From Podarcis liolepis (taxonomy: Eukaryota), in the NCBI GenBank assembly GCA_965112155.1, contig OZ218100.1: a stretch of DNA of 64,000 nucleotides; one strand, written 5' to 3'. This document shows positions 55,889-56,212 of this stretch, in pieces (position 1 is the first letter of the stretch; each line of letters opens with the position of its first letter). The notes below the pieces were generated by a model. It worked only from the letters and a program-made list of their open reading frames with translations, was not told the DNA's origin and ran no database searches. Position numbers and translations under genes: made by a program.

Positions 55889-55977
55889 GCTGCTTGGCGG
55901 TTTTATGCTACTGATTGCAGACGAACAAACCTGACAGCCACTTGGCGATATTATGAAAGTATTCTTCCATCCCTTAG
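55889..55977 (+). CDS. KCNQ5: Candidate alternative exon 8a, KCNQ2/3/4-type: [29 protein letters not shown](R/S)
   Basis: 89 nt; pyrimidine tract plus AAG acceptor; AG|GCATGT (GC) donor; phase 0 to phase 2 like canonical exon 8; aligns without gaps to recalled KCNQ4 [30 protein letters not shown]. Confidence 0.85.
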
Positions 55978-56028
55978 GCATGTATCAGTGCTACAAATGA
56001 CACAAAAATGTCATGACTTGTATTGGTA

Positions 56029-56114
56029 TACTAATACGCTTTTCTTTTCTTTTTTGTTTCATCCCCTGCTCCCTCTTGCCTTTATTTCCCTTTCTTTATC
56101 ATATATTCTGCATG
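56029..56114 (+). promoter_or_regulatory. Distal branch point (TACTAAT), AG-free polypyrimidine tract and TGCATG (Rbfox) element between exons 8a and 8b
   Basis: TACTAAT at 56029-56035; no AG from there until the acceptor at 56116-56117; TGCATG at 56109-56114. Confidence 0.7.
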
Positions 56115-56117
56115 TAG

Positions 56118-56212
56118 TGTGTATGGCGTAGTTATGCGGCTGATGAGAAATCTGTTTCCATTGCTACCTGGAAGCCTCATTTGAAGGCCTTGCATACCTG
56201 CAGCCCTACAAA
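56118..56212 (+). CDS. KCNQ5: KCNQ5 canonical exon 8 (8b): [31 protein letters not shown](K/N)
   Basis: 95 nt, long pyrimidine tract plus tag acceptor and gtaggt donor; matches the recalled human KCNQ5 peptide. Confidence 0.96.

Follow-up and report, generated by a model that had tools for sequence, protein, structure and literature searches.

A candidate tandem pair of exons 8 in KCNQ5 coding for part of the calmodulin-binding helix A

Helix A is the site where calmodulin and, indirectly, PIP2 control the gating and trafficking of Kv7 channels. To our knowledge, the alternative splicing described for KCNQ2-5 leaves helix A unchanged and touches the linker that follows it. The plus strand of the window (the whole stretch of 64,000 nucleotides of Podarcis liolepis DNA analysed here) is part of KCNQ5, and it carries an exon-like segment, 8a, between exon 7 and the canonical exon 8, termed 8b. 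The question raised by this locus is whether 8a is a coding exon of KCNQ5 that could be used in place of 8b. We consider it likely that 8a and 8b are a tandem homologous exon pair coding for the second half of the calmodulin-binding helix A (the xxWRxY of the IQ motif) and the TW segment.

All the features considered here lie on the plus strand. Exon 7 (52421-52516; GILGSGF…NPAASLIQ) ends in phase 0 at the I-Q of the IQ motif, with the donor CAA/gtaagt (in nucleotide motifs a slash marks the splice site). The acceptor region of 8a (55849-55888) consists of a pyrimidine-rich tract (78-80% Y) and an AAG acceptor (cacaag/G). Exon 8a itself (55889-55977) is 89 nt long, runs from phase 0 to phase 2, holds 29 codons plus AG (R), and would encode a KCNQ4/3/2-type second half of helix A with its TW segment. 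A GC donor is found at its end (55978-55986, G/GCATGTATC, in the context TTAG/gcatgt), containing GCATG, and a weak alternative GT donor, CAT/GTATCA, starts 4 nt downstream at 55982. Both donors had been omitted from the initial annotation. The intron between the two exons (55978-56117) is 140 nt long and has a pyrimidine tract of ~77 nt at its 3′ end. It also holds a branch-point-like TACTAAT (56029-56035; its A, at 56034, lies 56 nt past the 8a donor and 83 nt before the 8b acceptor) and a TGCATG (56109-56114) located 4-9 nt upstream of 8b within ttctgcatgtag/TGT. Exon 8b (56118-56212), the canonical KCNQ5 exon 8, is 95 nt long, again runs from phase 0 to phase 2 with 31 codons (K), and is bounded by the acceptor tgtag/T and the donor AAA/gtaggt. 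The two exons are thus adjacent on the same strand, separated by one intron, equal in phase and close in length. The coordinates, lengths, phases and peptides first given for 8a and 8b were all borne out on the sequence.

Two exons further downstream could receive either copy. Exon 9 (58682-58708) is a 27-nt cassette, phase 2 to 2, that reads (K)KEQGEASS and accepts 8a or 8b. A 57-nt phase-2 exon (SKLYSNKQKLFRMYTSRKH; 63496-63552, ag/T…AG/gtatcc), read by eye, is a possible further partner of both; it resembles a 19-residue insert known from a KCNQ5 splice variant.

Local frame translation was carried out on the possible combinations of these exons. The 7+8a+9 and 7+8b+9 messages are both open. 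When both copies are joined through the GC donor (7+8a+8b+9), a TGA is met at 56182-56184, and when neither is included (7+9) a TAG is met inside exon 9. The initial annotation had stated that joining both exons shifts the frame. This is true of the GC donor, but not of the GT donor at 55982, which lengthens 8a to 93 nt and brings it into frame with 8b; 7+8a(93)+8b+9 is open. Because a premature stop follows from both exons or from neither, mutually exclusive use of 8a and 8b is the best-supported reading, one that we infer with fair confidence. Each exon being 3n+2 nt long, the mRNA would be open only if exon 7 is connected to exon 9, or to the 57-nt exon, through exactly one of them. Messages with both or neither would presumably be removed by nonsense-mediated decay, enforcing exclusive use.

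The identity of the two copies was addressed by comparing their peptides with PDB chains using phmmer. The 29-residue peptide of 8a matched KCNQ4 (E 4e-7), KCNQ3 (5e-7) and KCNQ2 (4e-6), with E-values ranging to 5e-5; with human KCNQ4 it shares 20 of 28 residues without a gap. Canonical KCNQ5 scored only E 0.54 with the same query. By these scores the similarity of 8a to KCNQ4/3/2 lies far above chance. The earlier assignment of 8a to the KCNQ4/3/2 type is upheld by the E-value for KCNQ4 and also by exon structure, the length of 89 nt and the boundaries being those of teleost kcnq4 exon 8. The 8b peptide is identical at 31 of 31 positions to the solved KCNQ5 chains 9j38 and 9liz. Its supposed resemblance to KCNQ1 was not recovered: a phmmer search of 8b against all PDB chains, with E up to 10, returned KCNQ5 chains only. 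No Pfam model spans the exon-8 segment.

An exon-8 HMM, built solely from the exon-8 peptides of other species, was then run against the 2898 stop-to-stop pieces of the six-frame translated 64-kb window. The sole significant match was 55889-55978, that is 8a (E 1.4e-18); 8b came second at E 0.37 and the remainder was noise. Thus two exon-8 copies are present in the window, and no third. The two copies share ~17% ungapped identity and the common skeleton WRxYAxD…ATW, and the profile is weak on 8b. Their homology would therefore rest mainly on position and phase.

To find 8a in other species, 1.84 billion representative proteins were scanned with HMMER, giving 16 matches. Ten of them represent exon 8 of KCNQ4; some are spliced (…PSFRELxLLF), and the others are genomic ORFs that end directly behind …PSFR, as an AG/GTAA or AG/GTGA boundary would predict. 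The other six are genomic ORFs in which an 8a-like peptide of equal length is followed by H-V and then S or W, the translation of AG/GCAYGT. At two teleost loci, P0002 and P0012, the 8a-type ORF continues into 8b (…CMQ/…; in P0002, …FCMQ/CVW), which identifies them as KCNQ5 loci. The exon is also found in the goodeid teleosts Xenotaenia resolanae (P0011) and Goodea atripinnis (P0023); in the latter, a KCNQ5-type pore and exon 7 (…LSAGFALLG…RRNPAAYLIQ) are followed by a short intron and then by 8a. A second protein search (89-283 aa) added P0024, P0025 and P0026. The last of these is a hypothetical protein of 138 aa (lerEdw1_001320) from the skink Lerista edwardsae, in which exon 7, 8a (…SLRH) and 8b are joined.

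With the window included, 12 distinct 8a-type sequences were obtained. Each has 29 codons plus AG with zero indels, and in all 12 the segment is preceded by Q or K (CAG or AAG) and followed by R-H-V. Their invariant pattern, A.WR.Y.TD..R....ATW....S..P..R, is a subset of the KCNQ4/2/3 consensus. The 8a of the window is 90% identical to that of the skink, 77-83% to a tetrapod-like group and 60-63% to fish, while its 8b is 93-100% identical to the 8b of other species. Stops or frameshifts in the 8a of relatives had been named, together with a lack of junction reads, among the results that would speak against the exon; all 12 distinct copies are intact, in searches that can find intact copies only and to which losses in individual lineages are invisible. 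Two genomic ORFs, P0006 and P0014, carry an exon-8 peptide that falls next to KCNQ4 in the exon tree, yet end in the 8a-type R-H-V-S tail of a GC donor; if fish have a second kcnq5 paralogue, this peptide may represent its 8a. Two annotation oddities (P0027, P0086) are also recorded: an Epinephelus 'KCNQ2-like' model with exon 7 twice and repeat-like filler between, and a Platysternon KCNQ4 misnamed 'DNA-directed RNA polymerase III subunit RPC9'.

The exon tree was computed on 30 columns with KCNQ4, 8a-type and 8b sequences. In it, exon 8 of KCNQ4 makes up a single clade (93/80); this exon hardly varies between sharks and mammals. A basal grade, compatible with one group, contains the 8a-type sequences, and 8b stands alone on a very long branch. 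On this topology 8a counts as the conservative member of the pair and 8b as the derived one. A search with the shark KCNQ4 region returned 6513 matches; among the 120 listed, almost all were KCNQ4.

DNA-level comparison was made possible by a related-locus search in metagenome contigs, which gave four loci, L001-L004. Two of these, L001 and L004, come from metagenome Ga0065711 and consist of vertebrate DNA, of which one 551-base stretch shows the same layout of 8a, GC donor and 8b; being possible human contamination, both loci were left out of every comparison. L002 (MDSQ01137622) is a piece of a teleost KCNQ5 with both 8a (accag/GCTGCG…CACAG/gcatgtatcc) and 8b, separated by an intron of 221 nt; its 8b boundary reads ttctgcatgcag/TGTGTTTGG…. 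The same record set yielded L003, which holds exon 8 of kcnq4, 89 nt long, with CAG/gtaggt at the homologous boundary.

Between the 8a of the window and that of L002, 17 of 21 synonymous sites are changed (pS 0.81, saturated) against 13 of 66 nonsynonymous sites (pN 0.20), giving a pN/pS of ~0.24. The differences fall 9/4/17 on the three codon positions (chi-square 8.6, 2 df, p ~0.014). The saturated pS, the low pN and the codon-position pattern together indicate that 8a has remained a translated exon for >400 million years. The 8b exons of the window and of L002 differ at just 6 places in 93 nt, each of them a third codon position (pS 0.25, pN 0.014). Both exons are hence conserved as coding sequence across species, and 8a changes much faster than 8b (63% vs 93% amino-acid identity, fish to window). 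Faster evolution of 8a is as expected for a minor isoform, but is equally expected under relaxed constraint. These comparisons point to 8a being a translated exon that has been under purifying selection since before the teleost-tetrapod split.

A recent conversion of 8a from kcnq4 was also considered as the source of the similarity. The L002 8a and the L003 kcnq4 exon 8 differ by pS 0.64 and pN 0.32, and this divergence rules it out.

At the DNA level, 8b is ultraconserved, and its silent sites are constrained (pS 0.25 vs 0.81 in 8a). This constraint suggests an overlapping RNA-level function of 8b.

The presence of 8a in transcripts was sought in public data. Words of 8a were found in ten sequencing runs from four organisms, and 0 of the 10 is on record as RNA. 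The runs are small (70-110 million letters); they resemble target-capture data, and the capture may have included the 8a-8b block as an ultraconserved locus. A search for RNA-derived protein fragments of 33-103 aa with a 7-8a or 8a-9 junction returned nothing, and the protein search at 89-283 aa gave genomic ORFs and the Lerista model only, with no 7-8a or 8a-9 fragment. These results bear on the alternative that survives best, although we regard it as improbable, namely that 8a is an unspliced relic in this species, kept because it overlaps a non-coding element, for instance an enhancer of splicing or transcription that serves the ultraconserved region of 8b. The small capture-sized runs would fit such a relic, as would the unusual conservation of the whole 8a-8b block, in which pS of 8b is so low between fish and window. 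A non-coding element does not, however, account for the three-base periodicity of the changes in 8a, where amino acids rather than bases are conserved, as expected of selection on translation; moreover, every 8a copy seen retains its phase along with the acceptor AG and the donor.

Somewhat less probable again is that 8a serves as a conserved regulatory 'poison' exon, which would be joined to 8b through the GC donor, reach the TGA at 56182-56184 and lower KCNQ5 through nonsense-mediated decay, with no channel isoform being translated from it. The premature stop on co-inclusion is what such an exon needs, and weak splice sites together with a conserved flanking intron are typical of regulated exons. 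A poison exon need keep no protein sequence, whereas 8a retains the consensus residues of its paralogues, with the low pN/pS at saturated synonymous sites and no indel in >400 million years. The reading of 8a as an ancient functional alternative coding exon of KCNQ5 is very probably the right one, as judged by these patterns of conservation.

The choice of donor decides how 8a would be joined to its neighbours. The GC donor AG/GCATGT is non-canonical, a point against the use of 8a. It is identical in the window and in L002, and an AG/GCAYGT type is present in every 8a-type ORF. It fits the donor consensus at -2, -1, +1, +3, +5 and +6. The GT donor at 55982, which is likewise present in the teleost L002, is without G at -1 and +5. 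We favour the GC site as the probable donor of 8a because the exon of the paralogues ends exactly there, because it fits the consensus, and because it is the sole donor that lets 8a join exon 9 in frame. The fusion of exons 7, 8a and 8b through the GT in the Lerista model is probably an annotation artefact. That 8a is always joined to 8b through this GT, as 93 nt adding 31 residues (…SLRH) before the canonical half of helix A, is very improbable even though the resulting message is open, the GT recurs in the teleost and the Lerista model is so annotated, since CAT/GTATCA is a poor donor, the exon of the paralogues ends at AG/G (the GC position), and the model is a 'hypothetical protein' with no stated RNA support. 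In addition, judging by solved KCNQ-CaM structures, the clamp of helices A and B on calmodulin would probably be disturbed by a second copy of half of helix A.

Under mutually exclusive use, 8b would give the known KCNQ5 protein and would be the major form, given its strong sites and extreme conservation. Exon 8a would be a regulated minor form, as suggested by its weak AAG acceptor, its conserved GC donor at the position where the paralogues have GT, and its faster evolution. Three non-coding blocks can be aligned between the window and the fish: the 8a donor (G/GCATGTATC), ACTAAT..GCTTTT in the intron, and the 8b acceptor (TTCTGCATG(T/C)AG). The first and the last include (U)GCAUG motifs, GCATG at 55978 in the one and TGCATG at 56109 in the other. 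L002 keeps both of them, the second as ttctgcatgcag/TGT, and the second is also conserved in P0002 (…FCMQ/CVW). The background of TGCATG is 0.4 per kb on the same strand. In the tetrapod-like (cluster-1) ORFs, the second motif reads TGCAC, as deduced from their translations. By the position rule of Rbfox proteins, a motif downstream of an exon activates it and a motif upstream represses it; the placing of the two motifs here fits this rule. A conserved (U)GCAUG on the 8a donor and another just before the 8b acceptor would suggest an Rbfox-type tissue switch between the two exons.

The ACTAAT..GCTTTT block is found 83 nt upstream of 8b in the window and ~143 nt upstream in fish (L002 442-449). 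With the long pyrimidine tract after it, the block looks like the distal branch points of other regulated exon pairs. The distance from the branch-point-like motif to the 8a donor is 56 nt in the window vs 77 nt in the teleost, and with this spacing, steric exclusion is unlikely as a conserved mechanism. RNA structure was also considered. A local hairpin (55974-56034; -18.1 kcal/mol, z ~-3.1 vs mononucleotide shuffles) pairs the 8a donor with TACTAAT, and its arms, when translated, coincide with blocks common to the tetrapod-like ORFs (HVSVL and HDLYW). These arms are not kept in the teleost L002. The 271-nt 8a-8b region has no unusual RNA stability (z -0.84), and no long inverted repeats were found in it.

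At the protein level, inclusion of 8a would yield a channel with a KCNQ4/2/3-like helix A, two residues shorter. It would restore an Arg (column 12) that is common to 8a-type and KCNQ4/2/3 sequences and absent from 8b. The equivalent position in KCNQ2 is one at which mutation weakens calmodulin binding. It is plausible that 8a changes the control of the channel by calmodulin and PIP2. Since its coding sequence persists from bony fish to reptiles, 8a would very probably allow KCNQ5 to exchange part of the calmodulin-binding site through alternative splicing.

If the second helix-A exon is conserved in this way, KCNQ5 would exist in two versions of its calmodulin interface, one KCNQ5-specific and the other KCNQ4-like. 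These versions would bear on the diversity of the M-current in neurons, muscle and the auditory system, and on the behaviour of heteromers. The pair also bears on genome annotation, where one automatic model, that of Lerista, already fuses both exons. KCNQ5 is linked to epilepsy and intellectual disability, and if 8a is also present in mammals, the gene would have extra coding sequence there. A more far-reaching and tentative proposal is that 8a and 8b form an undescribed, vertebrate-wide switch >400 million years old that makes helix A KCNQ4-like in certain tissues, probably under Rbfox-type control, and that operates also in mammals, where variants in 8a would go uninterpreted. The literature searched describes no alternative helix-A exon of KCNQ5 and no 8a/8b pair, and no paper treating KCNQ5 together with mutually exclusive exons was found in it.

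Among known systems, the closest comparison at the sequence level is with KCNQ4 exon 8 (PDB 7vnp, 7byl, 6b8l). The two share the length of 89 nt, the phases, the boundary (…R = AG/G) and the consensus AAWR.Y.TD..R..L.ATW..Y.S.LP..R. They differ in that 8a belongs to KCNQ5, where it precedes the canonical exon 8, has a GC instead of a GT donor, and evolves faster. Exon 8b (PDB 9j38, 9liz and 6b8q, the last Kv7.5-calmodulin) has the same protein position, phases and flanking exons as 8a and the same xxWRxYAxD…ATW skeleton, but is 6 nt longer and is without the Arg of the 8a/KCNQ2-4 type. The known KCNQ5 splice variants, formed with the 27-nt exon 9 and the 57-nt exon, belong to the same gene and lie immediately downstream of the pair; they alter the linker between helices A and B, whereas 8a/8b would alter helix A. 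Exon 9 of KCNQ5 has been reported to be a cassette exon in human muscle (PMC5803615). The human catalogue of Hatje et al. (2017) lists a different pair, in KCNQ2, and KCNQ5 is absent from those parts of its supplement that were consulted. In layout, 8a and 8b resemble the tandem mutually exclusive exons of SCN alpha genes (exon 5a/5b) and SNAP25 (exon 5a/5b), which are likewise adjacent homologues of near-equal length and equal phase, and such pairs are ancient and accompanied by conserved intronic elements (PMC5740500, PMC2581893, bioRxiv 10.1101/2025.08.16.670673). The difference is that exclusive use of 8a and 8b is deduced here from sequence and frame. By this analogy, the KCNQ5 pair would join the tandem-duplicated mutually exclusive exons of ion-channel genes, a kind already known, and would illustrate cleanly how the minor copy of an ancient exon pair can be retained with a GC donor.
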